A stretch of 64,000 bases of DNA from Takakia lepidozioides (lineage: Eukaryota > Plantae > Bryophyta), in contig CM060732.1 of NCBI GenBank assembly GCA_030704615.1, forward strand, positions 37,572,001 to 37,636,000, in the 5' to 3' direction. The position numbers and the translations under genes are program-made. Of the stretch, positions 6,698 through 57,205 are shown in pieces. The notes below the pieces were generated by a model, which was not told where the DNA came from, made no database searches, and worked only from the letters and a program-made list of their open reading frames with translations. Positions within the stretch are counted from its first letter, which is position 1; every line of letters begins with the position of its first letter.

Positions 6698-9600
6698 CTA
6701 CCTCATTCTCCTCTCTAGATTCATCCTCAGAATCATCAAATACATCGTCCTCTCCCTCTCACTCTCCATCATCTCCTCCTTTTCCTCTGGCATCAAAGAG
6801 TCCTTAAGCTCCTCCAGTATATGAGGCTCCATGAGCTTCCATAGCCACATGGCAGACTTGCCCTTGAAACGAACCACAGATCCACTTCTCCTCTTCTTCT
6901 TCTCCTTCTCACCATCAATGGTTCTCGCTTTGAGGGCCTTAACCACCAGTGCGAGCTCCTTAGCTGTATATTGTGAACCATTCAGAATATAAACCCCTGT
7001 GAGGCTACACTTGCTTCCCCCATACATGTACCAATACGCAAGTGATCGGGGGTTTAGCCAGCGGTCGATCAGCCTAGGGATCACTGGACTTCCATCTGGC
7101 CGATACTGGTGGGCATAAAAGCGGAACGACCCATGACTGATAGTAGAAAACTGAAGCAGACTCACTTGCGCAGCTAAGTCAGAAAGGTCCTGAACAGTCT
7201 CCACTCGGGGTGCCTGCTGAGCCCAGTCACTAAATGTCTTGTACAGGTGGTTGATCATGACTGTTCCAACATGGGTGTTGGGATCAAGTCCAAAGTGTAT
7301 CTCATAGGTCCTGTCATTATCATGGGTTTCTATGCGTGCACCCCCCAACACCACCCCTACCAGCATTTCTCTTTGATCCTGGACCAGGCTCCTAGGTCTT
7401 GCTTTCTCTTCATAAGCCACTTTCTTGGGGCCCACTGCTTCTGTCACAAAAGGCTTGGCCTCTGCTGGGAGTTCCAGCTTCCGAGCAGTAAGATGCGAGT
7501 AAATCTCTTTCACTTTTTCTTGACGTTCTGCTTTACCAAAGGCTTCGAGCAAGAGACTGTAGGTTTTCAAGTTAGGACGAATTCCCCCCTCAGCCTTCAT
7601 CCCTTCATATACCTCGTCTGCCTTTCCCAGCTGTCCGCGCTTGATGTACGAATCAATGAGTACGTTGTAAGACTGGTGATTAGGTCGACATCCACTTCCC
7701 TTCATTCGGTTGAAGAGTATCTCAATCTCGCTCAGTAAACCCTTCTCTAGGTACATCTCCATCACTGCATTATATGACGACTGTAAAGATGGGGTATCCG
7801 TGGCCTGAGCCCTCTCCAGCAATATTTCAGCGCTCTCTCTCTCCCCTGCCTTTGCCATGGCTTCAATAATTGCCTCATAAGCATTGATGTTTATATGGAT
7901 GCGATCAGCCTCCATCTCCTGGAATTTTCGCAAGGCTTTTGCAGGCATCCCTGCTTTTCCGTAGGTCTGTATGAGGGCCACATATGCACGCCATTCGAGC
8001 TTAGCCCCAGCCAATATCCCCAGAACCTTTTCGGCTTTCTCAACATCTCCACCATGTGCACACACACGCAGCACGGCAGTGTAGACATTGGGGCTTACAT
8101 CTAGGCCCGACCCCTTCATTTCCTCAATCAAGTTTTCCACCCTCTCTCCATCACCCTTCGTCCCATGCAAGTGCATCAGAGCAGTGTACATCACAGTCCA
8201 CATGTCTTGACTGAAGTGATCTGTCCATGGTGCCCCCTTCTTCTTAATGCTCTCAAATAGTGCATCCGCTTGGTCAAGATGTCTGGTAAAGGCACCTCCA
8301 GCCCGGTCAGTGAATGCTTGAAAGAGTGAGTATGCCAGGGAGGGTGGTTGTTCATACGCACCCAACTGCAACATCTGATTGTAAAGACTGAAGGCCTCAT
8401 CAAGGGATTCAGAGGACCGATCATCAATATACCCACTGATAAGTACGCAGTAGGTGGTCTGATCAGGCACTTTCCCATTAAGAATTGTGGTGTCAAAAAG
8501 TTCGCGTGATCGCGACAGCTTATTCTTGCGGCCCAAAATATTCGCCAACTTTGTATTCAGCTCGTAGTCATCCTCATACCATGGCTGTTGCATCATCCAT
8601 TTCAACACCTGCACACCAAAAGTTTTCGGAAAGTAAAGATTACGGTGGGAATCATAATTGGTGCCTAAAGTTTTAACTGAAAAATGAAACCCACCTAGCT
8701 CATTTACAAGCATGCTTGGTAGTACCTTCAAACGAGGCAGGACCTACAACAACCTTGTGCGACTCCATACATTTCAGATACACAATGCCTTTTGACATGA
8801 AACACTATTAGGTGCAAAAATGCAACAATCCGAGGGTAAGAGAACCATAACAGTTTTCTGAAGGAGGACAATCTACCCATATTCAATGCTAATGAGGTGT
8901 CGGAAACAAATGGCTGTAACGCTGAGTCAGCCAAAGCCACATTTGCAGAGTTGGTTTGACCTTGATGGCTGGAGCTAGATCTCTCACACCAGATTGTCAG
9001 TCCGAATCACTGTAACAGCCAATGAACTACTTCATCTCCTAAAATGTTGAAACAAGTAACGTACTCTGTGGGCACGCAAAACTTCCTCCCTCCGTAGCAA
9101 ATGCTCAATGACTTGCTTGCTATCAACAGCTGTGATCCATGACCGCTGCCCATTCAGAATAGTCACAACACCAGTGGGTCTCAACCCTGGAATCTCCTTG
9201 CACAGCCACCCTATCTTCTTCCTCCTCCACTCCTCTCTCGACTCCACAAACTCTCCCTCTTCTTTGTCATCTTCCAAGCTAGCTTCCAACCCCTCCTCAT
9301 CGGAATCCATGTCATCCTCCCACTCAGAATTTGCAATAGGCTGTGCTTGTGCTTTTTTTTTCCTTACCATGTACTGCCACTTCTCCTCCCCTTCTGCCTG
9401 CTTTCTGAATGGCTGTCTGGTAGGCCTCACATATTCACCAGCCACCCCTCGCGCTGCACCTCTGAACTGTGAAACTCGGCCTCTCCCACCACTACTGCCC
9501 CTCCCTCCTCTCAGACTGCCTCTTGTGTACGGTGAGAAACTAGCATGCCCATCATCTCCATAACTGCCCACTGACCTGTCATGAGGTTGCTCATCCCCTA

Positions 9601-11011
9601 CTTCTCCTTCCTCCTGGTTGCCTCCAGACGACCTCCATCCTCTATCCGTGTCAAGGAGCTCAGATTCGCTCATATCCTGGGGTAACATACGCGGCTCTTC
9701 TCTGTCTCCATATTGACTGAACCTGTCGGGAGCAGCTCTTTCCCTGTTGCCAAATCGGCCAAAAAGCCCTCTTCCTCTAACCCCTCCCCTTCCTCTCACC
9801 CCTCCCCTTCCTCTATTGCTCTGATATCCTTCAAAACTTCTTGCACCTCCTTCCCTTCCACCGTACATGGACTGCCCCCTCAACCTGTCAAACGATCCCC
9901 TCGCCCCATTAAACGCACCCCTCCCTCCACGGAGTGCCCCCCTAGAACTCCCATTAAAGCCTCTTCCCCCCCTTCCCCCCTCAAAACCCCCTTCTCCATA
10001 GGTCTCCAATCCTCCACTTGTCCTCCCAAACGTGCTTCCATTGAAACTGCCTCTACCCCCCCTCGCCCCCCGAAACCCGCCTCTGCCTCTGCCTCTTAGA
10101 AAAGGCCCACTCCTCGTCTCAAAACCTCCTTCTCTGTCAGTGTCCAATTCTTCATTTCCCCTCTGAAACGAACCCCCGTTGAAACTGCCTCTACCCCGCA
10201 TTGCCCCCCGAGTTCCGCCCCTGCCTCTCACGGAACTTCCATTCCTCTCAAAACCTCCTTCTCTGCCCCCCTCCAATCCTCCACTTCTCCTCCCAAACGA
10301 ACCCCGATTGAAACTGCCCCTACCCCCCCTTGACCCTCGAAATCCGCCTCTGCCTCTCCCTCTCACAAAACCCCCACTCCTGTCAGAATCTCCTTCTTTA
10401 CCGTTCTCCAATTGTCCACTCCTCTCAAACCCCCCGCCAGTACCATTCCCAAAGTCACTCTGAAAATTGTTCCCGCCCCGGTAAGAAGAATATCTATCAC
10501 TTCCACCTCTCCTCTCGCCCACAGCACCACCCCTGCCCCTGCCTCTTCCCCCCACCCTACCTCTGCCCCTTCCCCTGTCTCCAAAACTGGGTCTTCCCCC
10601 ATAGCCTTGAGAACTTTGGTATTTCTCTCCTGTACCCTCAGGCCTCCCTTGACCCCATCGACTGTCGCCCTCTCCTCTGTCCGCACTCCACCTATCTCTC
10701 TGAAAAGTTCGTGGCTGGGATTCTGAAACGGCATTAGCCTGTTCGTTGCGGACCTGCAGGGAATTCGACACGGTGTGGATACTTCTTTTCTGGTCAGAGA
10801 TACTCAATCTCAGTCCTCCAAAACCCCGCCATTCCTTAAACCCTAGAGAGCATGCTCGATTCAAAGAGTGGGGTATTTCTTTAGAGCTTCTGCAATCGGT
10901 TGCAAATGACTTGCAGCAGGGGCAATGCAAGGACCGTGACACCAAGGAGGGCAGCGGAGAACCCAGTTGAAAGAGGCGCGCACTGGGCAGCCCAGCCCTG
11001 AGCAATAACAT
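6698..11011 (-). CDS. OTP51: OTP51-like PPR protein with C-terminal LAGLIDADG-like domain and RGG-rich N-terminal region. Exons approx. 11011-9065 and 8608-6698
   Basis: WLCKEIP...ILNGQRSWI motif, P-type PPR array, then QREMLVGVVLGGARIE, FRFYAHQY, IPRLIDRWLNPRSLAYWYMYGG as in OTP51. Donor AGA|gtacgt and acceptor tgcag|GTG join in frame. First ATG is at 11011 (the ORF-track start at 11029 is GTG). Confidence 0.88.
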
Positions 11012-12139
11012 TTCAGCTGCAGCTTCCACTTTTTCACCACTGAGGTCCTCCCTCAGCTGTACCCTGAGATGCTCTCATGCGTGCTCGCCTACCTTTCCTG
11101 ATCCTTACACCGCCTACTCATATCACAAGGGATTCAACTGGGCTCTGTCTCTTTGCACACTCTAGATTCCCTCTCTCTCAGAAACCCATCTTCAAAAAGG
11201 TATGCACTACATAAGTAGTGGATAAGGTAGAGATCATACTAGACCACCCGTCAACTGTTTCTACTCTACTTTATTACAAGATACTACAACGTGTTTTTCA
11301 CTCGAAGGGAAGGGGACAGAACAAGTGTTGTGTCTCAGATGAGAAATGCTAAACATATTCCCGGAACCCAAAATGTAAACCTTCTCTCCATTTCGTCTCT
11401 CTCAATTGTTGGACTCTTCATTCTTCCTTCTGTTCCTTTCATCTCTTCCTTTCACAAGGAAAGGAAGGATAGAATCACTTGGCGGTGTTGCTAAGTATCT
11501 TTCATTACGATTCTCGAGGTTCCAGGTTTCAGTCGTGTTACAAGTGATACTGATCGGTATCCCAGCATTGTCCAAAAACATACATGTTATGTGCAGTATC
11601 ACCGGCTTTTAACTTTTAACGTTCACATAAATCTGCAATGCACCATTTTGTCTTTTTCCGTTTTGTTACGTGGCTGCTTATTTGGTTTGTCGAGATTGCT
11701 CTTTCCTTCACAGCCGCTGAGGCTTGCTCTACTCAATGCTTCAATGAATGTGAGCTTTTCATTTCCTGCCCTAATGACTTCTGCTAGGAGTCAGTGTGAT
11801 GTGTTTATGCATGGCTATCTTGCTTTGGTGACGTTGATAGGGTACATACACCTGTATGTCCAAGAGGGATATCTCTCTTACCTCTGCGCAAGGCCCAGAA
11901 AGAGAGAGGTTAAGGAAGGAAAGAAGAAACTTATAACCTCCCTTGAGGGCAGAGACAGAGAGACAGATCTCGATTTACTTCTCAAACTTTACTGCCATAG
12001 CCTTGAGCCTGCACCAAGTATGTATGAAGCTAAAGAGAGATCTCATTCCCTGTGGGATCTTGGCTAGTCCCTGCGAGCTAGTAACCCTCCCAGAGCAGGT
12101 GTGGGGTTCAGCAGCCGGGCGGGCCCTCCGTGGTTTCTG

Positions 12140-18000: not shown

Positions 18001-19479
18001 AAAAATCACATTTCCACAAACTTCTGCAGCAAGCTACAAACTTTAGAAACCCAGAAGCTTAGGATTTTTGGTGGCAACGCCCCCTTGACTGTGCATGTGC
18101 CACGGCCAGAAACTGCTGGTGGAGAAAGCTCTGTGATGGCCAACATTCCCCGGGGTGACACGGTTGAATGGAGGTGTCTTTCAACCCCCCAAAATGTCAC
18201 TACAAAAGCGCCTATAGCTAATCTATGGATTAATAGGAATAAAAATCTGCCCCCTTCTCAAAAATTGCTTGGTCAAACAAAGCATCTCAAGCGAGTTTCG
18301 AGGTCATTCCAAATCACATTTGGTCCCCACATAATCCTGCAAAACCAACCCTCAAATTTTCTGGATTTTGGGATTTGGGAGATATGCATGAATCTGTAAG
18401 GTTCATTTTCATGGATGAGTGGTGGTAACTGAGTAGGGGTGGTGATTCTTAGAGGTTTGTTCCAAGACAGTTAAGGGGGTAAACATACTTGAACTTCCCT
18501 CACTCATAGGATCTCAGTAGAGGTGAAGCAGCATGCACAGATGGTAGGGCCATATACAATGGACATGTGGACTTCCAAAAATATCCAAGCACCAGACTTG
18601 CCAGCGAGAACTGAGTCAGATGTAATGGTTTTCACTGTCTTTGAGCTGACTGCCTGTCAAACCAAGCGACGCCCATCCTTTGCCAATAGTGAGATTTACT
18701 TTCATCCATAATAAACCTGAAAATCCATTTATTTTTCATAAATTGTTCAATAAGAAAGATGTTATCTGAGGAAGGTATTACCTTGAGAAGCATATGAGGA
18801 AGGAGTTTCCAGCAAAGGAGAGGAGGTAACGCCTGGGAAAGGCATAGTAGGGGCTTAGTGATTTTTGACACTCCTAGGTACTAAGCCTACTCTTTAGAGT
18901 AAGATATTATAAAAGCCCATAATCAATTGCATAAAAAATAGGGATGGATTATTGACAGGAAAAGCAACTTTAAATGAGCAACTTAGCTCCTTCGGCCTTC
19001 AGAGGTTATTTTTTCCACCACCTTTTCACGAATAAAGTTCCAGGGCCTCCGACCTTGTTTACTTTTTTAAATTGAGTGGTCCAAATCGACTAAGACTATA
19101 TTTGATCTAAAGCTCTCAATCTTGAATATACTGCAATAGTCGAAATATATGTGTAGAATAACCAGTGGCATATTCCAACATTGGAACAGATATGTGGAAT
19201 ATCCAGTGACCTGTTCCAAATTCAGAATATTTCAGTGCAAATTACGGCAATACTGCACTCCTATAGAACGTTAGCCAGCTTAATGCCTAATAATTATTCA
19301 AAACAAACTGATACATTAGGCATGTTCCCCAAACTATAGGCTCTCATTTTTTAATATTAGGGTCTTGAATGCACCTATGGGCCCCGCCAGTATGGCACAT
19401 GGGGTGAGCTCATAAACCCACCGCCCATTCATCGGGTCGGCGAGATTCTGAAATTTTTTTGTTCATTTACCACGGCGGA

Positions 19480-19655
19480 CCTTCTAGTGGACTGGGCATA
19501 CCCTCCAACAGACCGGCTCCAACCTTCTAACGGACCGGCAGACCCTCTAGCAGACCGACGAACGGACTGGGCAGACCCTCCTCCGGCAGACCGGCACACC
19601 CTCCTGCAGACCGACGAGCGGATTGGCAGACCCTCCTCCAGCAGACCGACGAGGG
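19480..19655 (+). repeat. Degenerate short tandem repeats (GGCAGACC core) that truncate the 3' end of LINE copy 1
   Basis: Repeated ggcagaccctcctcc.gcagaccg units visible directly. Confidence 0.6.
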
Positions 19656-20077
19656 GATATCGATCAAGGCAGAATATAAAATCGATAAAGTGGATGATGA
19701 GCTGCGGGGATGGTGAAGTAGATGGCGAGGCTTGAACAGGTAGTCCCTGGATAATGAGTATGTCCGGGCAAAGCCGGGCGGGGCATGAGCAGAGTATTCG
19801 AGTGCATGTGCATGGTAGAAACCATGGCGGCATGGTGTGGTCTGGTGGCCTCCCTTGGAAGGTACCGGCGTTAATGAGTGTGAATCATCGGGTTCACTAC
19901 AGGAAAAGGGGGGAGTTTCGACGCCGCGGCGTCGTAAAACAGCTTTTTTCGGGAGGGGGGAAGAACCAAATATGCGACGTCCGGGCGTCGCAAGCCCGTC
20001 GCCAAAAAAAAGTCGCAAATTTGCGACCAATGGGGTCGCAAATAGGCGAAACCGCGATTTGCGAAGCTCAGGCGTCG

Positions 20078-20109
<32 letters not shown>

Positions 20110-23100
20110 ACTCTATCATGCAGAATTAGCACCGTCCGGGGGTCACAAAGTGCGATGCCCGGACGTCACAATTTAAGGGGGTATATTTGAATTTAGGCGG
20201 GAAAATTTGAATTTGAAATTTGAATTTTAAAAACTTGTTGACCATTGACTCTGGTTCTGTCTAATGGCGATATATTCATTGTTCTACATATATCATGCAA
20301 TGCATACTTGAACCTAAGATCTCCACGTTATAACATTTATAAGACACTACAAACTAATCAACACACCTACGCTACATCTATGTATCACAAAAGCAATCTA
20401 TATATATATATATAACGATTTCTTTCAAGTTCCTTCTAAGGGGTCTTTCTTGTGACGTTGGGGAGTTGCAACCTCCACAACCTTAGTGCCCAGCCCCAAC
20501 CCCAGCGTCGTCGCCGTTGTTGCACCCCCCCACCGCCAGGCGCCCCAAACAACGTTCTTGTGATGACCTAAGCTGACCACAACACCATTGCGACCCACTG
20601 TGGCGACACCGTTGCGACCCTCTGGCGTCGCAACGTTGGGCGTCCCAACGCGGGGCGCCCCCAGCGATGCTTTTGTGAAGTTGAGGCCGCAAAGCCCAAA
20701 AAAATATTAAAAAAAAAAAAAAAAAAACTCTCACATTGGTGATGTTGTTGCGATGCCCTGGCGTCGCAGAGGCGCTGGGGCGCCCTTAGTGACGCTTTTG
20801 CGACGCCTCAGCTTGCAACGTCCAACCAAAAAATATATATATTGGATTTCCGACGCCGGGGCGTCGCAAGAAAAAAATTTCGTCGCAGCGAGGGCCCTTT
20901 TTTCCCCTTCATGTCACCTTACGACGGCTGGGCGTCGTAATGGTGTCGCAGCGGGGGATTGCGACGTCGAGGCGTTGCAAAAAAGCGTCGCGGGCTCGGC
21001 GTCGAAGGCTTGATGTCGCGCGGGGCGTGGAGGCGCAGCTGGCGTAAACCCCCCCCCCCCCCCCCCCCCCCCCGCCCCATTTGCTGTAGTGGTTTCGGCG
21101 TGTTTTATGAATAATTTGTGGAGATGCCAGACTGCTTGGTTGTGTCGAGTGATATGAAGACCATGGATAACCGGATGCGTGCACTAGCTCAGGAGGTGCG
21201 GCCAGGTATCACGTGCATTGTGAGTTGTGGAGCACAGTGGGCAGTAAGGTGATGGATAGAGATATGGCCAGAAAATGTGTTTGCGTTGATGACCCATGTA
21301 TTGGGCGTATCTGAATTTAAGTGTCTGGCGGATTTGTGCATCAGTGATAGATTTGGTGTGCCAGAAGTGGTTCGAGAGTTTGTGATGTAATACCTCGGAT
21401 TGGGTCCATTTTTTAATATGTATTTTGGTATGACTGATAGAGGCTACGGCCTGTTTGTTTGCTTCATGAGTGAGGGTGGCCAAGAGATTGCGTGTGGGTC
21501 GTGGTGCGGTAAGGTTCGGAACTGGGTGTATAAACCAAAAGGGATAGGAGTGGGCGATGTGGATAGGATCGTTGGTTGGTTTGACTCTGAGTTTGGTGGC
21601 ACCGAGCTGAGTGAGGAGGTCGGCCTCCTCATTCCCTTGAATGTCAGTGTGCGAGCATACTTTGAGTAGGTGTACTGGGTGTTTTATAGAAACGGCGGCG
21701 TTGACAATGGCTGAGATGAGGTTGCGGTCAGGATGGTGGTGGTGGGAGGAGGGGCGGGCAATGTGGTGCAGATGAGGAATAAGGAGGTAAGGCTGTCAAT
21801 GAAGATGAAGTATGGGGGGGGAGAAATGTATCGAGTAGGAGGAGAGCATCGTATATGGCCATAAGTTCGGCCCTGAGAATAGTTGAAGGGCCAGGGAGTT
21901 TGAGGGTCACCCCTCTCCCCGTACCTGCGTGATAGATACCATAGCCTGCATTAGTTTGAGTAAGGGATCCATCAGTGTAATGAGAGTTCGCAAGGGGGTA
22001 TTTGAGGGGGTAGGATTGTTGATAGAACGAAGGAACTGGGGGAAGATGATCTGTTGGTGTGGGCTGTGGGGGGCGTTGCAATGCCTCAATCCAGGCTTTA
22101 TTTGTTTTAATTCGGGGGAGGGGGATAGGTATATTTGTACAATGGAGAATATGTGGGTGATGGATGATGGTCTTTATTTTATGAGTAACGGTTAGTAGAT
22201 GTTCTAGTTTGTGATAGAAAGGTGTGGGTATGGCAGCGTGGTGGGGGTTTTGGACGTGGATTCTTTTTGCCTAAGGTATTTGGGAAAAGGGGGGGTATGG
22301 GTATATTTAAGCTGGTTTGGGTCAATTGTGGCTAATAGCTTGATCTCTGTAGGGAGGCGTAGAAGTGGATGAGAGATGGTAGGTGTGTTTTTGTTGTGTA
22401 AGGATGAGAATGGTTGAAGCATAAGAAGAGGAATGTGCAGCAAATTTGGCCCATTGAAGTGCTTCATGAGCGACGGGTCCAGATGGAGGGTGAGCGAAAC
22501 CATGGCCCTCCTAGGTATGCTGGGTAGCATTAGCAGTGGCCCCAAAAATGTAGTCCCTATGATGTGGGCTGGCAAAGGTGTCGAGTTCCATAGGGTAGGT
22601 TAGTGGGTTGGAGTAGTATGAATGAGTGATCTGGAATATCTTGATAAGTAAGACGAGAATATCTTGGGGAATAGTGTGATGTGTGCTTGCCATTTCTAGT
22701 AGTGCAAGGGAACGCGGTTTTTTAGGTGAAGTGTCTTTGAGATAGCGGTCGATAAGCCAATATACTTCTGTGGCAAAATCTTGTTTAAGTGGAAGTAGCT
22801 CATGTGAGCATGTCTTTGGGGTAGAGTATTTGTTCCATAGCCATGTTAATCTATTGTTGGGGATGAGCCCTATGTAGCGGCCATTTTGTGCATATATACT
22901 AGCAAGGCCGGGGCCCATGCGGATTAGAGGTTGAGCATGTTGGATATCTTTGTCAGGGTTACATTCAGCTATGCATATGTATATGTTGGGGGCCGAGATC
23001 GGTTTATGAATGTATCTGTTGTTTGTATGTTGAATGGGGGTGGCATGTTGTTGGTAAATATGTGTTAGGGAGTCAATGTTAGTGGTTTTGTAGAACATGG

Positions 23101-23780
23101 TGAGAATGGTGAGATTGTGGTCTGGGTCACAATCGTCATGTGGGCCAAATAGATCATCTTCTATTTGTCATGTGTTGTCTTCGTCAGGGTAGCCGGCCCA
23201 CTTGCAATGGTAGTATGTGTCAACACAGGTGGCCCGAAGGCGTCAATTGACGTTTGGGTTTTAATACCTAGACATAGGCATCCAAGTTATCAGAGTTATG
23301 CGGGGAGGTAGGGTGAGACATTGTGGGGGATAGTGGGGGATGGGTGGAAGTGTAGTGAATTCATTTTGCCTTAGAAGTCGGCGCCGTGTTGCTGTGGTAA
23401 GTTGGGTAAGGGTAGTAATGTGACGTTCTTTGAAGTAAGTGAGGATGGGAATTTTTTGTTTTGGGTGAGAGACTTCGAATCGTGATAGAGAAGGACTTGT
23501 GACCCACGTGTTCCAGTGGTGAAGAGGTGTTTGTGGTAGCCTGGTAGGTCCGTTTGTATACTTATTTTCATTTGGCGGAGGATGAGTAGTGTACGCGCAG
23601 TGGGGGAGTGTATGCAAGCTTGTGGGTATAAGGATGACAATGAGTGGAGACCGTTGTATTTTTGGGCAAAGAATCTGAGAAGCCCCTGATAGATGATACT
23701 AAGGCGCCCGATGTCACTTAGCGCTTCTTTCAATTGTGTACCTAATGTGTGGGCGTACGAAATAATTAATAGGCTGACAA
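19655..23780 (-). mobile_element. Decayed RNase H- and RLE-bearing non-LTR retrotransposon (Dualen/RandI-like), copy 1, interrupted by the CACTA element at 19895-21091
   Basis: Order on the minus strand: GTQLKEALSDIGRL, chromo-like YYHCKWAGYPDEDNT*, FGA...AHPP MTase-like region, RNase H (YTDGS, RAEL, DS, GNEEAD), CPLC...HLLS*C..HITRHN knuckle, then PDILIIQGLP...HFIDFIFCLDRYP endonuclease; stops and frameshifts. Confidence 0.8.
19895..21091. mobile_element. Non-autonomous CACTA (En/Spm) DNA transposon, 1197 bp
   Basis: Left end CACTACAGGAAAAGGGG, right end reverse complement CACTACAGCAAATGGGG; 3-bp TSD GTT (19892-19894 and 21092-21094); GCGTCGC/GCGACGC subterminal repeats; removing it restores the host LINE reading frame. 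Confidence 0.92.
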
Positions 23781-26643
23781 TATTTGAACACCAAACCTCG
23801 TGTTTATTGTACATTGCCCTGACAACAAGCATGTAGCCGAGTTGTAAGCCAAACTATATCTTCGCATTAGGCAACTTCATAAATATATACATTTTAACGA
23901 ACAACAGTGACATATTTTTTAGTTAAACGCATGAAAAGATAAAAATGATTTTATGAGTATATACCCGGGTCTCAGTAAAGGTAACAAATGAGAACCAGGC
24001 GGGGGTGTCATTGAGCAATACCCGGTTGTTTGGTAGAATGTAGGTTTAGGGAAATTGACCTAACCACCTGCAAACCATACTAGTCGCAATATGGCTGTTG
24101 GCGATGCTGTAATTGAGACCAATACTCAAGGGCGAGCAGTTGAAAATGGGAGGGGTAGGCATTATGACGTTAGGACGCCCCATGTCATGGTTTTAGTCAT
24201 GGTTGATTAGAATTACCTGCTTCTAGTTAACTAGGACATTTTGGATATTTATATTTGTATTTTGTGTGTTGGGACTTCATTTGGTCTCATATGCCAAGTG
24301 AGGTGTCAAGCCACCTCACTTGGAACATGGGGGATGGGTTTTCCCCTTGTGAGGGTTGAGGAGGGCTCATCTTTTTGTAGTTGAGCCTCCATGAGCCTCT
24401 CTGTGATTCTATGGTCAAACGATGTTTTGAGACTCGTGAAGATATTTGAAGCTCCTCAACGATCCCAATAAAGCACATAAATTTGACACAACCTTCCCAA
24501 AGAAACTTGCACATGCGCGATTATTTTTTGAGCTACGCGAAGGAGGCCAAAGAAATACAACAATCACAGCACCAAGTCGGAGACAAAAATCAAACTGCAT
24601 TGCAAGCAATATGAGAAAGGTTTGAAAAGATTTGCTCAAAATTCCGAGTAATTAGGCACTTTTGCCATATAGTTTCCGATCAATTAGGCAAAAATATGAA
24701 AAATTACTAAAATGTATTAGGCGCGTTGAATTTGACTTAAATATTATTGCCTAACCGGCTATATGGGTACTGTAGTAATGGAAAGAAACCACCTCTTAAA
24801 GGAATAATCCAACCCTATCTTATGTGCAAAAGCGTATATGTACAAAGCGGTCAATCGCAACCAGCCCTACCTTTTTAGGCGAGATTCAGCCTAAAAGCAC
24901 AAAAAAAAAAGTGGGCCCGCAACACCCCTATGCAAAAAAACAGGGCCCTGAAAAATAAATTAATAATAATAATAAAACCAGGGAATGTCGGTTCCTTGGC
25001 CATGTGGTGCCAGAAGGCACCAAGGGAACTGACCCTGGTTTCCATAACCGAGGGGCGCCGGCCCCATCGCACCAGGATCTCGCCACTTGCACCTCTCAAA
25101 GTCCAGGCATGGGCATGCGCTAATTTCGCCACCTATTTCTACCTCCATTTCCAGATGTGTTCCCTGGGTAATATACCTATATAAGTTATGTAGAAATCGC
25201 CATATTGTACCACATATATAACCTGGTAGGATCGGAGAAGACTATGTTTACTCAACGAGTTGAATGCAAGCGTGGGAGCCTTGCGATACGGTCATCTGGA
25301 ATGGCCGTACCGACGAACGTTCCGACAGGGCATCGTGCATGTTGTCAAATCCCCATCTCCCCTTGCTCCCCTCTCACCTGGAGCCTGTATTGTAGACTAC
25401 AAGATTATAAAATCAAAGGTTTGGCAAGAAGTGGATGGTAGTGGGGTGGCTAGGTGATATATGTTCCAACGACAAGGTTGGAGATTCAATTTGTGGTGGT
25501 CAAAGTACATTGAGTGATTGGTTGTACATGTGATTAATTAATTATATTTTTCATCTCCAAAATAATTCTAAGTCCAAGATCCTCACTTTGCTCCGTGTTC
25601 CCAATCGCTCCTTTGTCCCCTCCTTGTTCCTAGCCCCTCTCCCCTATCCCTGTCCCTTGTCCTCATCCCCCGTTCACGGTCCCGCTCACCTCCTCGCCCA
25701 TGTGGAATGCGGCTTGCTCCCCTATTCCCGGTCCCTGCTCCCCTTTCACTATGGGGATAGTCCGTGAACGGGAACATAATAGCAAAATTGGAGAATGTTT
25801 GGGAACATGGTCCCGAAGGTGGGGAGCATGAGGAGGGAACAATAGGTGTGGAGCGCTCCCCACCTTCGCAATGGGGGGATGAGGGTTGACTGATAGTCTC
25901 CAGGAGCCTCCGCCCAGCCCGGCCACCACCTCCAGCCTGGCCACCACCTCCCCCGCATGCCTTAAAACTCGTTGGGTAGGCGTAGTCCTTGGCCATAGGA
26001 TTCCGGTGGACATTGTACCAGTCGCCACCTCTGCACTTCAGGTAGAAACACCCAAATATGAGCAGGTCTCAAAATGGACCCTTATTTTTGGGGTGTAAAG
26101 TGGTCCCGCCTGGCCTTAAATGACGACCTTACTGCCAACGGGCTGTTTTAGGTTCCTTCATGGGCATTGTGGGCCCCATGGTGCTTTGTTAGATGAACAA
26201 AAACGTACTGAATATTGTGAGCAGCGTATTTGCCAAATGGAGGCCTTTTATAGGATACCTTTTGCTCTTGTGGGCCGAGCTCTTGGGTGAGTTATTGGGC
26301 CATTTCAAGTGCACATCTTGTGCATGTCAGGTCACATGTAGGCTTCATATTAGATAATATTTCAGTGAGTTATGGTACCCTCTATAGCTCATTTTTGTGC
26401 CCTGCCACTTTGATAATATATATCATTTAGCCACTTCATCCAAAATTCATGCAATTCAAACCACAAGCTGTTTGTTCAATTGCTCATCCAGTCATATAAC
26501 TTTTCCCCTTACTGCACCAATTGTACGGGCATATCTGCTTAAGCGCTCACATTTGGGTGTAACTACCTTAATCCCAAAAACAATTTGTCGCGGCCACACC
26601 TACAACATGAAGTGCCATCCAAAAATTAACCTATCAAAATAAA

Positions 26644-29522: not shown

Positions 29523-32500
29523 ATGGCTATATTGCCATTCTTCTTACTCCTTGGACTCTCCTTCAACATTCTGTTGTTAGCCGTACTTCCATACCCAGTG
29601 TCTTCCACGCTGTCGTACGACTATGTGACCCTTAACTTCACAGCATCCCCGTTACAGTACATAGACAACAACGGGTTCTTTCTCAAGTCCATCGATGGCT
29701 CGTTTGCCCTCGCATTCTCAAGCAATAGTGGGGACATCACAAATTTTTACTTGAGCATTGTTCACGTATCCACGCTAGTGATAGTCTGGTCGGCAAACCG
29801 GAATTCCCCTGTGGGTGAAACTGACGTGCTGGAGTTCCGAAGTAGCGATGGAAACGTAGTGCTACATGCAGGTCGGACTTTAGTCTGGGAAACAAATACC
29901 ACAAACCTGCGGGGCACTATTTTGCAGCTGCAAGAGTCTGGAAATTTGGTGCTTCTCACCGCAGTTGTGCAAGGGACTGTGCTGTGGCAGAGCTTTGACC
30001 ACCCATCAGACACTTTGTTGTCTGGCCAGGTCAGCTTTCCCATAAACATTGATTTGTTGAATTCCAATACTTTGTTCAGAAAGCCTGAAACAAATACTGC
30101 ACTGCTCACTGCGTAGATATCCTTGCAGTTTGGCCAATGGTCTGATGGTTTAGATGGAGGTAGATTCCATTTGTCAGATATTTCAGGATTTATGATTCCC
30201 TTTTATTGGTGCTGCTCATGATGGGGAGTTGGTGGGAGATTCCTTGGCTTTTTCCTCCTCAAGCCAATAAACAAATTTGTATGTGCACTGGGTTTTTGTA
30301 AAAACCATACAGGAGACATGTTCTGTTTCTAATATTTCTCTTTTTGCAACCAGAAGCTTCAGTCTGGCATGAGACTGATCAGCAGCGTTTCATCAACAAA
30401 TGTTTCTGAAGGATTGTACTCCCTGGAGATGAAAGCTGGGGATGACCTTGTGCTGTATGCTGACTTTCCTCCTCTGCCACAACCTTACTGGACAATGAGA
30501 GGCGACAGCAATACCGTGACAGAAAATCCAGGAACATCCTCATATGCATTGATTGACAATGGGATATTAGGTGTGTATGGCAATGGATCTTCGGCCCCCC
30601 TTTATGAGATCACATTAGACCAGTCCACAACAATGCTGCGGCATGCAACACTTGGAGCCGATGGAAATCTTCAAATTTACTTCCTTTATGGAGGGTGGAA
30701 TCTTGCATTTCAAGCAGTTTCGACAAGCTGCAATCTCCCAAGCTTTTGCGGGGCCTATGGGATTTGCAACAATGCTCAATGCAACTGCCCTCAGTCCTTC
30801 CAGCCAGTGAACAGTACAGATGTTTCGTCGGGCTGTCTGCCTCCAAGTACCCCACCATCTTGTCCAAATGCTTCAAGTGAGGGACTTCAGTTTCTTGACA
30901 TGGGCTCCTCAATTACGTACTTTGCCAACCAGTACTTAACCCCTTTGACTACAGGGCTGGCATCATGCCAGCAGCTGTGTCTTAGTAACTGCTCTTGTGC
31001 AACCTTCTTCTACTATAATGAAACAGGGTCCTGCTATCTATCTCAGCAATTGGAGGGTAGCCTCTTGTATGACGGCAAGGCGACCCACCTGGCGTTTGCT
31101 AAGATCAAGAGCAAGAATGGGGTTTCTGCACCAGGGATACAGAGCAATAAGGGAGGAGGTTTGTCATCGTCATCTGGTATAGCTATTGCAATTGGTGCTG
31201 TGACTTTGGTCATCATTGCTGCATTGTGTGGGGGTGCCTATTGCTGCTACAAGAAACGGAGGGGGGTTGAAAGTCCCCAAGTTCCCTTGGAAGACGAGAT
31301 GTTTCTGGACTCAATCCCAGGCCTGCCGACACGCTTTTCCTTCAAGGAGCTACAGTTGGCAACCAGCGAGTTCAGCAAGAAGCTTGGAGCTGGGGGTTTT
31401 GGATCAGTTTATGAGGGCGTGCTGTCTGGCAGCCGTAGGATCGCTGTCAAGCAGCTAGAGACAGTTGGGCAGGGTCGGAAGGAGTTCCGTGCAGAGGTGG
31501 CAACTATTGGAAGCATTCACCATGTGCATCTCGTCCAGTTGATAGGATTCTGTGCCGAGGGTTTGCACCGTCTCCTTGTGTATGAGCACATGGCCAATGG
31601 TTCTTTGGACAAGGCCTTGTTTACAGACAACGAGAAGGGGTTAGTGCTTGATTGGAAGACACGGGTTAACATTGCACTAGGCACGGCAAAGGGTTTAGCC
31701 TATCTCCATGAAGACTGTAGGGAGCGCATCATTCACTGCGACATAAAGCCAGAGAACATTTTACTGGATGATAATTTCTTGCCCAAGGTGTCAGACTTTG
31801 GATTGGCAAAGCTCATGAACCGAGAAATGAGCCAGGTTTTCCTCAAGTCTCTCATGTCTTGCATGTTGATTATTGCTGCAGGCAGGCAGGCAAACACCCT
31901 TGAGAAATATTCCAGTTGCAAACTATTGCAAAAAGCACATCATAACAACAAGATACCTGCTAGAAATACTGTCTTTAAAAAGTCTGTGCCTGTGGTTGTG
32001 TATTTCTTCCTCAATTCCTCATGCCTTCACTTGGTTGCTGCTATTTCAACTACACTCATCAGTGGTTGGCTGTGGCATGAGAACTGCTCATTTCTTATGC
32101 TTTTTCAAATGTGCGAAATACTTGTTGTTCTCCGACACTCCTCTCTGTGGAAACCACACACATGTTGGTTGGAGCAAGCTTGGGTTTTACTTGAGAGAAA
32201 AGAGTATTCATGAACCCTACAGGGGTTATTGGATCTTTCACTTTAGCCAAGCAAGTAATTTTTTGTGATCATTATCGAGGTGGCTTGAGAGTGAGTTGGC
32301 TCTGATTGGCAGGTGTTCACTACCCTCCGAGGCACACGTGGCTACTTGGCACCTGAATGGCTCACGAATTTTGCCATCTCTGAGAAAAGTGATGTGTATA
32401 GCTTTGGGATGGTGCTTCTGGAGATAATCAGTGGCAGGAAAAATTTTGATCCAGCGGAAACATCAGAGAAGTGGTACTTTCCTGCATATGCTTATCGGCA

Positions 32501-39200: not shown

Positions 39201-41034
39201 TCTGGAACCATATCAGAAATAACATGCAGCAGCGCCATCATCTCCAGCACTGGCTGGTAGGTGGCGACTTCAATATGGTGGAGGAAAAAAAAAAAGAGGC
39301 TTGGGAGATTGGTGCATGGTCTCTCCATGACAGAAAAAAACACCTGGGATGCCATGTCCTTGTTAGTGGGGCTGCTTGACGCTTCGTCTCCAAGCCAGGG
39401 CGAATTGAAATTCACGTGGTCGAACAACAGGGACCCCCCTCACTTGTGCCAGGTTTGGTTGGACAGATTTTATTGCTCCTACACTTTGAAGTCTTGGTCA
39501 ACCAGTGTCCCGCTGCAGCCCATCCTCCCGGAGTTTGACCATGCCATGGTGCAACTGATGTTCAACACTCTTGGGTCCAGGGTGAGAGGCAGGGGCTTTT
39601 TCAAGCTAAACCCCATCATGTTGCAGGACCCCTTCATCATACAGACCCTTCAGAATGCCTGGGAATCAGCTTCCACCCAGCTAGCCTCACCCACTACCAA
39701 ATTTTTGGCAAAGATGGAAATGTTAAGAGACCTTTGTAAAGTCATGTCAAGGGAGAAGGCAGAAGACAATACTAGAAGGCAAAAGGCTCTGACTAAGTGC
39801 TTGAAGGTCTGCCAGTTTAAGCTGCAGTCGGGTCTGGAGGGAGCGCACACCATAACTGCATACAAGGATGCCAAGAGAAATCTCTCCATGTTGTTACATG
39901 CCAAGGAGCAATTCATTAGAGTCAAAGCCGGAGTCAATTGGAGTCTCAAAGGGGAAAAGATGAATAGATATTTCTTTGTCAAGGCTGCGCAGCGGAGAGC
40001 TGCCACAATGGTCCCAGCTTTGCGAGATGCAAATGGACATTTGGTAGATAAGCCAAAAATCATGGCAGAAGTGGCAGCCTCATATTTTCAAGCTCTCTTT
40101 CAAAGGCAAGATGTTTCGCAGCAGAAACAAGATGCAACAGCAGCCCTGTTGCACCACATCCCCTGCTCGATCTCTCAACTGGACAAATCAAACCTGGTGG
40201 CCCCCCTGTCAGTGTATGAATTGGGGCAGGCGGTCAACTTTTTGGCATCCCAAAAATCGCCAGGACTGGATGGTCTCCCTATTGAACTTTTTAAAGCACT
40301 ATGGCAAACAATTGGGGAGGACTTCCTCCTTATGGCAAACGATATTCTGGAAAAACAGATAATGCCCTCGTAGATGGCGGAAGGTCTTATTACTCTAATC
40401 TTTAAGAAAGGAGATAGAGAAGATATGGCCAACTACCGGCCAATCACTTTGCTAAACTCAACTTACAAGATTATTGCAAAGATCGTGGCCTTGAGGTTGC
40501 AGCCCCTCCTGCCGAAAATTATTAGGAAGGAGCAGACTGGCTTTCTCAAAGATCGCATGATTTTAGAGAACATCCTGTGGGCCCATGAGGCCCTTCACAG
40601 AGCAGAAATAAACAGCCAGCCACTGGCTTTCTTAATGCTGGATTTTCAAAAGGCCTTTGACTCCATTGATTGGACCTTTCTGGAAGGGGCTATGGAGAAA
40701 TCAGGGCTGGGGGGGGGGGGCTTTCCTGACATGGGTCCATATCATCTTGCATGCAACATCTAGCAAGGTCATGGTTAATGGGATTATATCTAAGCCCTTC
40801 CACATTTCCAAATCGGTGCGGCAGGGTTGCCCCCTGGCACCCTTCCTCTTCCTCATAGCGGCGGACTCGCTGGGTCACATGTTGCACTACAGGCAAGACA
40901 TTATTGGCCTTCACTTGCCCACGCTGACCCCGAAGATGCTGAAACTCTCAATGTACGCAGATGACACTACTCTATTGCTGGACAACTCCACAAAGGCCAA
41001 CATTGACAAGGCACTCCAAATTCTCCACACCTTC
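36269..41034 (+). mobile_element. Decayed L1/Tx1-type LINE: ORF1 (DUF4283-like region plus CCHC knuckle) and ORF2 (APE endonuclease plus RT), 3' truncated
   Basis: CYHCNAEGHIKADC knuckle; ORF2 ATG at 38809 LSLVSWNVRGLG, NIYAPN, GGDFN, KSPGLDG, NYRPITLLN, LDFQKAFDS, QGCPLAPFLF, YADD; premature stops and homopolymer frameshifts. Confidence 0.92.
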
Positions 41035-53994: not shown

Positions 53995-55630
53995 GCGTAT
54001 CCACCTTAAACTGTTACTGTCCGACACTCACAACATGGCTATCACATCCTTTCCAACGCCACCTTTACACGCCCCATCTCGATCCCCCTACATACCAAAA
54101 ACAAACAAAACATGGATTCCGGCCCCTCCACGCCCCATCCCGTCACTCAATATTACCCCATGTTGGAGCACCTTCAATTCATCTAGGCCCCACCTCTTTA
54201 AAATACCCCTCAACACATGCACACTACACAGATGGCTCCCTGCAAGCTGGCTCCTACGCCGGATATGGAGTCTACCACGCGGCCACTAACATTGGTACAG
54301 CCCACTGACTTCCAGGCCCGCAACCATTCTACGTGCCGAATTTATGGCCATCTACGAAGCCCTCTCCCAGCTACACGCATTCCCCTCACCACACTACATT
54401 TTTACAGACAGCTTAACTTCGCTCCTTCTCCTGCGAAACCACATAACCAGCCCATCATCCCACCATCACCACCCAGATCGTAATTTTATATCAACAATCA
54501 TCACTTTAGCCATCTCAATCAACCAACCCATTCAATTTCTTAAAGTACATTCATATACCGGAATCAACGGGAACGAGGAGGTTGACCTTCTTGCCCAACT
54601 AGGGGCCTCCAAACCCAGCAATCATCACTTTAGCCATCTCAATCAACCAACCCATTCAATTTCTTAAAGTACGCTCACATACTGGAATCAACGAGAATGA
54701 TGAGGCTGACCTCCTTGCCCAAATAGGGGCCTCCAAACCCCCAGTAGAACCCTCCACAGACCTCATCCACACTGCACATACACACCCTTTCTGGCTAATA
54801 CATCCAATTCCAAGCCCTCCCCAACCTAAACCTATTCGTAACCTTTGCTCTACTCTCTCTAAAGAAGCTAACAAACAAGCCGCTACATCTTTCAGTCATA
54901 CCAAACAACATATCCAAAAATGGACACACTCCACAGTACTCCATCATAAACTATCCAACCACTTCTGGCACACTAAAGCCGCTTCCGACGCACAAATCAA
55001 ACAAATACTTAAGTTTAGATTTGCCCAGTATATGGGGCACCAGCGTAAGCATACCTTCTGGCCAACCATTTTTACATCCCTACACTGTTCCATCTGCTCC
55101 CATATACATGCAGTACCTGACACTTAGCCACATATCCTTAGTAAATGCCCCCACCCAGTCTTGCATGGCCTTCATATCACTAGGCACAATCCAATTGTAT
55201 GGCACATCCACAAACTATTACAACGACATAAAGAAACCAGATGGTTCTCTCTCATCAATGCTGACACTTATCAAGGTAGACCCCCAGACCATACAGTACC
55301 ATCCTGGCTATTACCCTATATTTGCCAACCCCATGCTATATGTACATGTCTTGCTGGCTCTGCCCGGACATCCTCTTAGTTCAGGGACTTCCCATCAACG
55401 TCATTCCACTCTTTATTACCTACCCCACTAGTAATCATACACTTCTTCGAATTTACGTATTGCCATGACCGCTTCCCGCACACCTACATTCTCGAAAAAC
55501 GCCAGAAATACGCTCCGCTTATCCTTGTTATTCGCCGACGAGGGTGGGCCACGGGCCTACTCTCCGTCATCTCCGCAGGTACCAGAGGGGGCATATACAA
55601 CGACAGTATCTCAACACTTCAAGACTCCGA
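53995..55630 (+). mobile_element. Dualen-like LINE copy 2 (RNase H, CCHC knuckle, RLE), with an internal 124-bp tandem duplication
   Basis: HYTDGS, RAEFMAI, FTDS, KVHSYTGINGNEEVD; CSIC...HILSKC..HGLHITRHN; PDILLVQGLP...HFFEFTYCHDRF...EKRQKY...GW; collinear with copy 1. Confidence 0.82.
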
Positions 55631-56856
55631 CTTTGATAGGCTAGAAGTTGTACCTCGTTCTCCACCTGATTGAAAATTTTCTGTACTGTTAATTCTTGAG
55701 ACAGACTCATCTTTCAAGTTCTTGCCATAAGCCATAAGCCATCAGCTATAAGCAATCGGCTATCAGCAAGGGTCATTTGCCGAAGTGACAAAGCAAAAGC
55801 TTCATCAGCTAATAAACGAGTACGCATATTAAATTTATTTATTAAATTTTGTCGTGGTTTGTTGCAATTACATAGAAACCATGGTTTCAATAATAAATCA
55901 TAAACATTGCTTTAGTTTTTCAACATTGTTTTGTATACAATATAATAAGCTTGTTCGAAGTGCTTATTTTTCCAATACAATCGTTATTCTATTAGGAAAT
56001 GAGATGTATAGATCAATGTTGGTTTGGTATCTTGAATTGGAAATACCAGAAGGGTCCTGGTATGCAGTGCTGAATTTTTTTAAGGTAGGTAGGTTTTCCA
56101 ATAATGCAGCCCTTGATTTTTTTCAAGTATGAATCTGGTATGCATAGAGTGGTTTAAAAAAAAAAATCAATCCGGATATGAGCAATGGTATCTGAATGTC
56201 AATAACCTAGAAATATGAACTCGGATATGGTATTAAAAAAGTAATAAAATAAAAATGATACTAGTTAGTATTCAAATTCAAATTGAATATTGAAATGGCC
56301 ATTTGAACTATTCATATGACCATTTGAATATTCAAGAAAACCACAAGGGAAACTGCTCATCTCATAGGATACCAACCCCCATATTTACATGATACCCGAA
56401 CAAACCTGCAGCGACGCGTCGAGCTCTGGTAGGGGCCGGGGAAAGGAGAACCCTAACCGCCGCATGTTAGGGTTTGGGGGACCGCCAGGGAACTTGATAA
56501 CCTTCTGGTAGGGTACTACAAATGTTTACGGGGACAGAGAACAGTAGGTTAGGTTAGGAGAGACCCGGGTTGATACCCGATGAAACCCAGATACCAGACC
56601 AACACTGGTATAGATCCAGGTGGCCGAAAAGCCCAGATTTTGTAATGGAGCTGCAAATTGGGGCAGCATGTACAATGGTGTGATATACCCAACATTCATC
56701 ATCCATCATTCATGATACTCCAAAAAAATCAGATTGAGGGCAAAAGGTCAAACAAAACTTTTAATCACACATGCCCATGCAAACACTTGCAAACATGCAA
56801 ACTAATTTGTATTGCTTATGAATTAGTGAAGGTCTTTGTTTTGTAAGGCTGGACTA

Positions 56857-57205
56857 GAGAGAGAAGACTCCGGCCGAAGCCGGCGTTTCTAAGAGCCACT
56901 TCACCTTGCGGCTATTACCCCATTTCGGGGTGGGCCCTATAAAAAGAAATGTGTCTTGTGGGACACCAAGTGACCATAAAAAGTAGGGGAGTCTGTAGTA
57001 TCCCTGGGTACCCGGGGGTGCGTTTGAAGTGCTGGATTCGAGTTGACGTTTGTTGGTGATAATAGCTGTGAGTGAACAAAGTGCCGTGAGGTGAATTGCT
57101 TTGAAGCATTTGTGGATGGGAAGAGTGAGAATTTTGAAGTTATCATGTATGTCATTGATACTGGCGTTATGAATGCCGCCTTGGAGTACCCGCGATGATG
57201 ACGTG
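56857..57205 (-). mobile_element. 3'-terminal fragment of the Dualen-like LINE family
   Basis: GGIHNASINDI overlaps in homology with GGIYNDSISTL at the end of copy 2; continues CFKAIHLTALCSLTAIITNKRQLES to the 3' UTR, hairpin and (CT)n tail. Confidence 0.78.

Follow-up and report, generated by a model that had tools for sequence, protein, structure and literature searches.

Dualen/RandI elements are reportedly a group of long interspersed nuclear elements (LINEs) of green algae, described by Kojima and Fujiwara in 2005. The group is defined by the presence of an apurinic/apyrimidinic endonuclease (APE) and a restriction-like endonuclease (RLE) in the same element (PMC9977147, PMC4640811, PMC5029228), and the domains published for the Chlamydomonas elements are APE, reverse transcriptase (RT), RNase H (RNH), RLE and a Josephin-related protease, JCP (PMC9977147). 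Accessory domains known from the group are Josephin in Chlamydomonas (PMC9977147) and a SET domain with a C48 peptidase in cryptophytes (PMC5029228). A tabulation from 2013 gives only L1 and RTE as LINE families of flowering plants and lists RandI only under green algae (PMC3747384). An earlier note on the DNA analyzed here, written by a model from the letters alone, had described Dualen as known mainly from algae; this holds for green algae, but cryptophytes were already known as hosts too (PMC5029228). The DNA is a 64,000-nucleotide stretch of the moss Takakia lepidozioides (assembly GCA_030704615.1, contig CM060732.1, positions 37,572,001 to 37,636,000 of the forward strand), hereafter the window. 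It contains dead copies of a LINE family, and the evidence supports a Dualen/RandI LINE with two accessory domains, a chromodomain and a PCIF1/CAPAM-like domain, for which no description in LINEs was found in the literature searched; nor was Dualen found reported there from this group of hosts.

Counterparts of the two accessory domains are found in other systems. In chromoviruses, which are Ty3/gypsy elements with long terminal repeats (LTRs), a chromodomain directs integration to marked chromatin. As in the window family, this chromodomain lies inside a retroelement Pol protein; however, chromoviruses belong to the LTR elements and carry it at the C-terminus of their integrase, whereas in the window family, which is non-LTR, it lies between RT and RNase H. 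DIRS1 elements have the order RT, RNase H, methyltransferase (MT), and cellular PCIF1 carries an N-terminal WW domain that binds the C-terminal domain of RNA polymerase II. DIRS1 is integrated by a tyrosine recombinase, whereas the window family is a LINE with the order RT, chromodomain, MT, RNase H, RLE. Both nevertheless have a PCIF1-clade fold beside RNase H in a retroelement polyprotein, with catalytic residues lost (Goodwin & Poulter; Iyer et al. 2016, PMC4738411), although some relatives of the window family, unlike DIRS1, have retained both N and Y at that catalytic site. The window family also shares its fold with the cap-specific adenosine N6-methyltransferase PCIF1/CAPAM (PDB 6IRV-6IS0), and FASPLN-like and FG motifs are recognizable. 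It differs in belonging to a polyprotein encoded by a transposon, where PCIF1 is an enzyme of the cell, in having no detected WW domain and in reading HPPS, HPPD or HPPN where the enzyme has NPPF. The cryptophyte element Dualen-1_GCr (Lescot et al. 2016, PMC5029228) is likewise a Dualen element with acquired chromatin-type accessory domains, but these are an N-terminal SET methyltransferase and C48 peptidase, whereas the chromodomain and PCIF1-like domain of the window family lie between RT and RNase H.

The more complete copy (copy 1) lies on the minus strand, and its coding strand is strongly C-rich (plus-strand GC skew +0.41 over 22-24 kb). Translation of 19400-24200 revealed a His/Thr/Pro-rich frame running from ~23300 to 21100 and resuming past an insert. 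The minus-strand segments 23215-21100 and 19894-19642 are collinear with intact metagenomic open reading frames (ORFs; tblastn, E 1e-65 to 1e-80). The encoded domains run from a chromodomain through a PCIF1/CAPAM-like domain, RNase H and a CCHC knuckle with RHN to an R2-type RLE. The earlier note had read the minus strand through its stops, with a CACTA insert removed, as one collinear protein; every segment that it listed is present in the order it gave, at tblastn E values far beyond chance. The weakest part is the post-RT region with which the note had the protein begin. A possible thumb or linker remnant at 23494..23769 (minus strand) sets the 5' limit of copy 1, and residues 1665-1747 of the metagenomic protein P0171, ~100 amino acids past its RVT_1 domain, align there collinearly. 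The assignment is thus plausible, but the match is marginal (E 2e-4 in a search confined to that stretch). Apart from it, no family signal was observed upstream of 23250, and none was seen further upstream. Loss of the 5' part is usual among LINE copies.

The remaining domains of copy 1, all on the minus strand, follow in sequence. A chromodomain remnant occupies 23144..23248; its C-terminal half is clear, with an in-frame stop at 23170 in the motif YYHCKWAGYPDEDNT-stop-QIEDDLFG (23215-23144). Next is a conserved module at 22800..23143, which belongs in part to a 195-aa ORF (22511-23098) and carries the motifs ECNPDKDI (22966-22943) and RLTWLWNKY (22852-22826). The PCIF1/CAPAM-like methyltransferase fold spans 22330..22799, the PCIF1-like region as a whole running from about 22966 to 22330. 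It contains the motifs YYSNPLTYP (22618-22592) and GFAHPPS (22501-22481, with HPPS at 22492-22481), and in-frame stops were found at 22513 and 22324. RNase H lies at 21600..22081, with a core at 21982-21613 bounded by the motifs HYTDGSL (21982-21962) and GNEEADLL (21636-21613) and a frameshift near 21789. The region of the CCHC zinc knuckle and RHN, 21092..21483, aligns to residues 309-532 of the metagenomic protein P0018; its motifs fall within 21243-21127 and comprise CPLCS...TWPHLLS-stop (21243-21187, with CPLCS at 21243-21229 and the stop at 21186) and ITRHNQAVW (21153-21127). Beyond the insert, the RLE catalytic core occupies 19642..19894. Its motifs, within 19875-19669, are RPPDHT (INAGTFQGRPPDHT; 19875-19834), CPDILIIQG (19770-19744) and IIHFIDFIFC (19698-19669), and the core breaks off before the conserved K. 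RNase H, the CCHC knuckle with RHN and the PD endonuclease, all named in the earlier note, were thus located in copy 1 by both motif and alignment. In the endonuclease of this copy the CCHC (with its stop), RHN and PD are present, D replaces E, and K is lost.

The insert is a non-autonomous CACTA-type DNA transposon of 1,197 bp (19895..21091) inside the RLE-coding region. It has CACTACAG terminal inverted repeats at both ends and a 3-bp GTT target duplication on both flanks, which are the features of the CACTA (En/Spm) group: CACTA... inverted repeats with a 3-bp target-site duplication. A GCGACGCC-type subterminal repeat recurs about ten times within it, and it also contains one stretch of A and one of C, each 30 nt long. 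No transposase was found in its 1,197 bp, and the insert is considered non-autonomous because of this. Excising it restores collinearity with the second copy in the window and with P0018. At its other end, the coding sequence of copy 1 stops at 19642, and the last RLE motif and 3' end are missing. In their place, directly past the RLE 'E' motif, are G+C-rich tandem repeats of ~20-35 bp (19475..19660); the alignment of P0018 past ~19642 falls in these low-complexity repeats and was not counted as homology. With six in-frame stops, one frameshift and the insert, copy 1 is a dead, 5'-truncated LINE copy, interrupted by a CACTA element and cut short at its 3' end.

The second copy (copy 2), on the plus strand at approximately 54000..55672 (blastn, tblastn), comprises RNase H, CCHC/RHN and RLE. 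As the earlier note had proposed, it independently repeats the half from RNase H to RLE: DNA identity to copy 1 is 67-69% over 54308-55219 (blastn), and protein matches extend over 54198-55620, where P0018 and a further metagenomic protein, P0065, align at tblastn E 1e-61 to 1e-69. The endonuclease motifs lost or altered in copy 1 are retained here, with the E motif IIHFFEFTYCHD at 55434-55469 and the K motif EKRQKYAPL at 55494-55520. Copy 2 is itself damaged: three in-frame stops and several shifts of frame interrupt it, and in the C-terminal part of RNase H a 124-bp stretch is duplicated in tandem (54495-54740; 2.0 copies, 91% match), doubling the GNEE.DLL motif. A (GCCATAA)n / 14-bp repeat was observed at 55724-55767, ~50 bp past the stop codon. 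RandI elements end in short repeats (PMC3747384), and this repeat may be the 3' microsatellite tail of the element. A third fragment, on the minus strand at 56989..57183, corresponds to the extreme C-terminus of the family protein and aligns with residues 640-700 of P0065 (40% identity, E 1e-6) and residues 650-715 of P0018. Both copies are dead, and the locus likely has no function for the host.

In Pfam searches, the stop-free pieces of the window itself gave only sub-threshold matches (PCIF1_WW at E 0.11 in the 195-aa ORF, RNase_H at E 1e-3), and the case therefore depends on relatives. The 195-aa ORF was compared with 1.84 billion representative proteins (HMMER), which returned 133 matches (46 with E below 1e-10). 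Almost all of these are metagenomic ORFs without a name, and many score above the Pfam threshold for PCIF1_WW. P0002 (444 aa), in which a Chromo domain (Pfam E 4e-9) precedes PCIF1_WW, matches 23212-22400 with 44% of residues identical (E 1e-65). P0018 (715 aa) and P0134 (749 aa) each hold PCIF1_WW, RNase_H, CCHC knuckle and RLE in one ORF. Both align to the window on either side of the CACTA insert; for P0018 the tblastn matches are 22792-21100 (E 1e-80) and 19893-19558 (E 4e-18). The RLE core of copy 1 aligns to residues 528-608 of P0065 (E 4e-19) and to residues 535-658 of P0018, and in both proteins the RNase_H domain (Pfam E 1e-14) aligns to that of copy 1. A feature search of the ESM Atlas started from P0134 was uninformative, yielding nothing beyond unnamed RNase H clusters (scores < 0.9). 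In several metagenome contigs (L002-L005) the moss-like Dualen-type ORF P0134 and an L1-like APE+RT element on the other strand are arranged tail-to-tail; the recurrence of this arrangement across samples probably reflects one genome locus.

Longer relatives extend the same series upstream. In P0105 (2,422 aa) the C-terminal part of an APE is followed by RVT_1, PCIF1_WW (54 bits, the cut-off being 31), RNase_H and an endonuclease with CCHC/RHD/RPD, and P0164 has Exo_endo_phos, RVT_1, PCIF1_WW and RNase_H in one uninterrupted ORF of 2,523 aa, which also aligns to the CCHC/RLE region. A search with P0105 recovered ~30 proteins of 1,600-4,000 aa, ~20 of which combine PF03372 (APE), PF00078, PF12237 and PF00075. 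These long proteins align collinearly to the window at 22-37% identity. An 8-kb metagenome contig of a moss-like subfamily, L007 (33-37% protein identity to the window), carries the full series on one strand: APE (25.9 bits against 24.5), RT, an ORF with chromo-like domain and PCIF1_WW, RNase H, CCHC and RLE. On L007 and on a second contig, L008, an APE ORF is found directly upstream of the RT and in the same orientation, collinear with residues 688-1697 of P0171 and 83-1008 of P0105. These relatives demonstrate in which order the domains stand and what each is homologous to.

They also bear on the possibility that a chromodomain-bearing element, a DIRS-like MT fragment and an RLE LINE were nested together by chance. 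The locus is TE-rich (rich in transposable elements) and full of stops, it holds one true nested insertion (the CACTA element), and outside this family it is in DIRS1 elements that MT domains like PCIF1 have been known, all of which would fit such a mosaic. However, on metagenome contigs independent of one another, every junction is crossed by uninterrupted ORFs that keep one and the same order (P0002, P0018/P0134, P0105, P0164, L007), the chromodomain-PCIF1 junction being bridged by P0002 and the contig L011 and the PCIF1-RNase H-CCHC-RLE junctions by P0018 and P0134. The order is repeated in dozens of long proteins, and no tyrosine recombinase was seen. Because intact natural ORFs bridge every junction, chance nesting was rejected and deserves next to no credence. 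The earlier note had stated that its architecture would fall if the upstream segments proved to be separate nested insertions; with these bridging ORFs, and with the whole order on L007, they are not.

No RT core or APE of the family is present in the window, as the earlier note had also observed; the sole other RT match belongs to an L1-type element at ~40250-41620. RT comparison was therefore made on relatives, in a tree of 68 rows obtained by a quick search with Shimodaira-Hasegawa-like approximate likelihood ratio (SH-aLRT) support only, in which L007 was read through three in-frame stops as X. All PCIF1-positive proteins, the Josephin-bearing ones and L007 fall in one clade (SH-aLRT 98), whose only named member is from Pleodorina starrii, and R2-like and Tx1/L1-like rows lie outside it. 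The sharing of this clade with Josephin-bearing elements, including that of Pleodorina, supports assignment to Dualen/RandI, and the evidence from sequence comparison supports the window family as a Dualen/RandI LINE. This supports the affinity suggested in the earlier note, which ordinary L1 or RTE grouping would have contradicted: the RT of the relative L007 is apart from L1/Tx1. The group has RNase H between RT and the C-terminal CCHC and RLE, and RNase H followed by CCHC/RHN and RLE is the order seen in copy 1 and again in copy 2. The 5'-truncated window copies have the RLE only; in relatives, P0164 has an APE in an ORF that also matches the CCHC/RLE region, and L007 and L008 have an APE upstream of RT.

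Published Dualen/RandI elements of green algae (e.g., Dualen-4b_cRei, PMC9977147) resemble the window family in having APE and RLE in one element and RNase H and CCHC before the RLE, and the RT of a close relative of the window family clusters with Josephin-bearing Dualen-type proteins, including that of Pleodorina. They differ in host, which for the window family is a land plant, and in that the window family has a canonical chromodomain. The moss-like contig L007 yielded no match to a Josephin protease, and the published Dualen domain lists (APE, RT, RNH, RLE, JCP) are without the PCIF1-like domain. A stretch homologous to the PCIF1-like domain is nevertheless present between RT and RNase H even in a Josephin-bearing protein (P0189). 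Some of the long relatives add Josephin, PHD or OTU domains. These extras vary among the algal-type members of the RT clade: in P0171, P0183/P0184 and P0188/P0189 they are an OTU-like protease (a weak match), a PHD finger or Josephin. Turnover of accessory domains in the Dualen-type RT clade is high.

The endonuclease itself is of the R2 type. R2 elements target ribosomal DNA and are not known to carry an APE, RNase H, a chromodomain or an MT-like domain. A profile of the CCHC+RLE region of the family matched R2 proteins (PDB 9DOU, 9NL2/3, 8GH6; E 3e-12) over both zinc knuckle and endonuclease, and the C-terminal CCHC knuckle, RHN motif and PD...E...K endonuclease are homologous. The C..C...H...C, RH[ND], (R/K)PD, E and K motifs are common to the family relatives and the R2-like proteins in the data set, and the R2-type signature of CCHC, RH[ND] and PD...(D/E)...K is complete in the relatives and in copy 2. 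This homology, and the fact that the window copy shows the RLE side only, would be compatible with an RLE-only LINE like R2 or NeSL that had acquired RNase H, the APE of L007 then coming from a neighboring element. However, the APE is directly upstream of RT on the same strand in both L007 and L008, collinear with single long proteins; P0164, whose single 2,523-aa ORF holds APE, RT, PCIF1_WW and RNase H, also matches the CCHC/RLE region; and in the RT tree the group stands apart from the R2-like rows. On these three grounds an R2-like origin outside Dualen was rejected as highly improbable.

In the case of the chromodomain, identification begins with P0002, of which residues 2-26, within its Pfam Chromo match, align to the window chromodomain (P0002 match at 23212-23135). 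The chromo-like motif of the earlier note thus aligns to a Pfam-positive chromodomain. The nearest relative of the window, L011, when read upstream in frame, encodes a complete chromodomain with the Y...W.GY cage pattern in the expected places. An AlphaFold2 (AF2) model of the L011 chromodomain and MT region had a mean predicted local distance difference test score (pLDDT) of 83, and Foldseek matched the modeled chromodomain to those of CDYL2, Chp1, CDY1, SUV39H1, CBX7, HP1, Rhino and LHP1 (probability 0.98-1.00, 23-40% identity). Membership in PF00385 thus comes from a profile match and a three-strand-plus-helix fold in the relatives P0002 and L011. In the window, only W.GY of the aromatic cage survives, and the N-terminal half is degraded. 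Pfam Chromo was absent from ten other relatives extending upstream and from residues 840-1330 of P0105. The module between chromodomain and MT fold is conserved across 22-39 relatives (three alignments) and was modeled as a beta-hairpin and helix at high pLDDT.

The MTase-like region noted earlier proved homologous to PCIF1/CAPAM by several routes. Relatives exceed the Pfam cut-off for PF12237. A profile of 22 family members, compared with solved structures, matched CAPAM (6IRX/6IRV, E 1e-10), with the family motif NPEY aligning to NPPF. In Foldseek searches with the L011 model, the six best matches were CAPAM (6IRV, E 1.8e-10 over 265 columns), followed by ZCCHC4, and a model of the more distant P0155 gave the same top six. 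Membership in the PCIF1/CAPAM family is thus indicated by homology of both sequence and fold. No WW domain was matched in any Pfam scan of the family; the chromodomain holds the upstream position instead. The catalytic motif of PF12237, NPPF ([DN]PP[FYW]), is absent from the window. At this position, motif IV, the window has HPPS, close relatives have HPPD, HPPN, YPTN and HPHN, and members of the Josephin subclade have HPxx; the conserved FASPLN stretch is altered to YYSNPLT. Both of the clade's deep branches contain proteins with NPEY, at least 17 in all (P0105, P0164, P0166-P0172, P0184 and others). Because these proteins fall in both branches, NPEY is probably the ancestral state, with the catalytic N and aromatic residue lost in the lineage of the window.

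Two diverged moss-like members, L007 and L010, were compared for the ratio of nonsynonymous to synonymous substitution (dN/dS), which was 0.175 overall, 0.11 in the chromo-like domain, 0.08 in the middle module and 0.18 in the MT-like domain; dS between them is high (0.65-1.1), so these ratios are rough. They indicate that both accessory domains were under purifying selection while the family was active. Preservation of the fold under such selection would also be expected if the domain were still an active adenine methyltransferase, marking the cap-proximal adenosine of its own transcript, or its cDNA, for stability or shielding from host defence. The retention of NPEY in the 17 or more deeper-branching proteins makes an enzymatic ancestor plausible, and the algal versions may be active. 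However, neither the window nor any close relative seen retains the N or the aromatic residue (HPPS, HPPD, HPPN, YPTN, HPHN), the FASPLN stretch has become YYSNPLT, and Iyer et al. called the analogous DIRS1 domains inactive on similar grounds (PMC4738411). An active enzyme is therefore clearly improbable here. The suggestion of the earlier note that the element marks its own RNA or DNA fares no better, because HPPS, HPPD and HPPN stand where NPPF is needed; the METHYLTRANSFERASE fold is unlikely to act as a writer in the lineage of the window. A domain kept under purifying selection after loss of its catalytic motif more likely binds than methylates, and a binding module is the most economical reading of the PCIF1-like domain. 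The inactive PCIF1-clade domain of DIRS1 elements has also been proposed to be a binding module (Iyer et al., PMC4738411). A further scenario, offered tentatively and considered rather unlikely, is that the ancestral Dualen had a working NPEY methyltransferase and that the land-plant lineage paired a dead version of it with a methyl-lysine chromodomain, the former enzyme holding the capped 5' end of the RNA or competing with the cap-methylation machinery of the host.

Considered together, these observations favor, with a probability of roughly 80%, a dead copy of a land-plant Dualen/RandI LINE whose full-length polyprotein had the order APE, RT, chromodomain, PCIF1/CAPAM-derived domain, RNase H, CCHC and R2-type RLE, with proposed roles in chromatin tethering and binding for the two accessory domains. 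Such an element would transpose through target-primed reverse transcription, with APE and RLE each cutting one DNA strand and RNase H removing the template. The chromodomain would tether the ribonucleoprotein to chromatin marked by methyl-lysine (of the H3K9me/H3K27me type) and may thereby bias insertion toward silent, TE-rich DNA. The PCIF1-like domain would serve as a binding module, most plausibly for the cap-proximal 5' end of the element's own transcript.

Several points weigh against this interpretation. The Dualen assignment comes from relatives that are only 33-44% identical in protein, the window copy being without RT and APE. The Dualen anchor of the tree is one named Pleodorina protein and the Josephin domain, not the Repbase Dualen/RandI references, and the tree is the product of a quick search with SH-aLRT only, in which the residue composition of L007 deviates from that of the alignment. 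The chromodomain is detectable by Pfam only in the P0002/L011 lineage; folds of other moss-like members match weakly (E 0.2-0.6), and these relatives keep the three strands and helix and have lost the GY of the aromatic cage. The roles of the accessory domains, methyl-lysine targeting and binding, are both inferred, and the high dS noted above tempers the signal of selection. None of the sequencing runs on record as RNA contained the sequence.

Other features of the window are separate from this family. An intact ORF of 677 aa on the minus strand (6698-8731) encodes pentatricopeptide (PPR) repeats and LAGLIDADG_2, an architecture known from plant OTP51; its closest database proteins are ≤68% identical and unnamed. 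Beside it, a 665-aa ORF at 9032-11029 (minus strand) has no match to Pfam or to a protein of the LINE family, and plus-strand GC skew is -0.30 over 8000-12000. At 29523-32213 on the plus strand is a G-type lectin S-receptor-like kinase of land-plant type in at least two ORF pieces, with B_lectin in the first, then S_locus_glycop, PAN and Pkinase. An L1-type LINE at 36899-41622 (plus strand), with a zf-CCHC ORF1 and an RVT_1 ORF, provides the only other RT of the window; it has no relationship to the Dualen-type family. The PPR ORF, the receptor kinase and this L1-type element fit a land plant as host.

No description of a chromodomain or PCIF1-like domain in Dualen or any other LINE was found in the searchable literature (Repbase, Dfam and subscription journals were outside reach), and no paper was found there describing this architecture, the prior annotation of which would have counted against its novelty in the earlier note. 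A Dualen-type family in a moss-type genome widens the range of the group beyond green algae and cryptophytes, and Dualen/RandI is the group that links RLE-type with APE-type LINEs. The PCIF1-like domain ties Dualen LINEs to DIRS1, the only retroelements previously known to carry such a domain, and the change from NPEY in algal-type members to HPPx in moss-type ones offers a natural system for the role of a cap-methyltransferase fold before and after the loss of catalysis. Chromodomains are the hallmark of the LTR chromoviruses, and within the same literature no report was found of one in a non-LTR element. If the proposed role is true, this would be the first LINE with integration steered by a histone mark, and if the chromodomain works, targeting by histone marks would have evolved independently in two great classes of retrotransposons.

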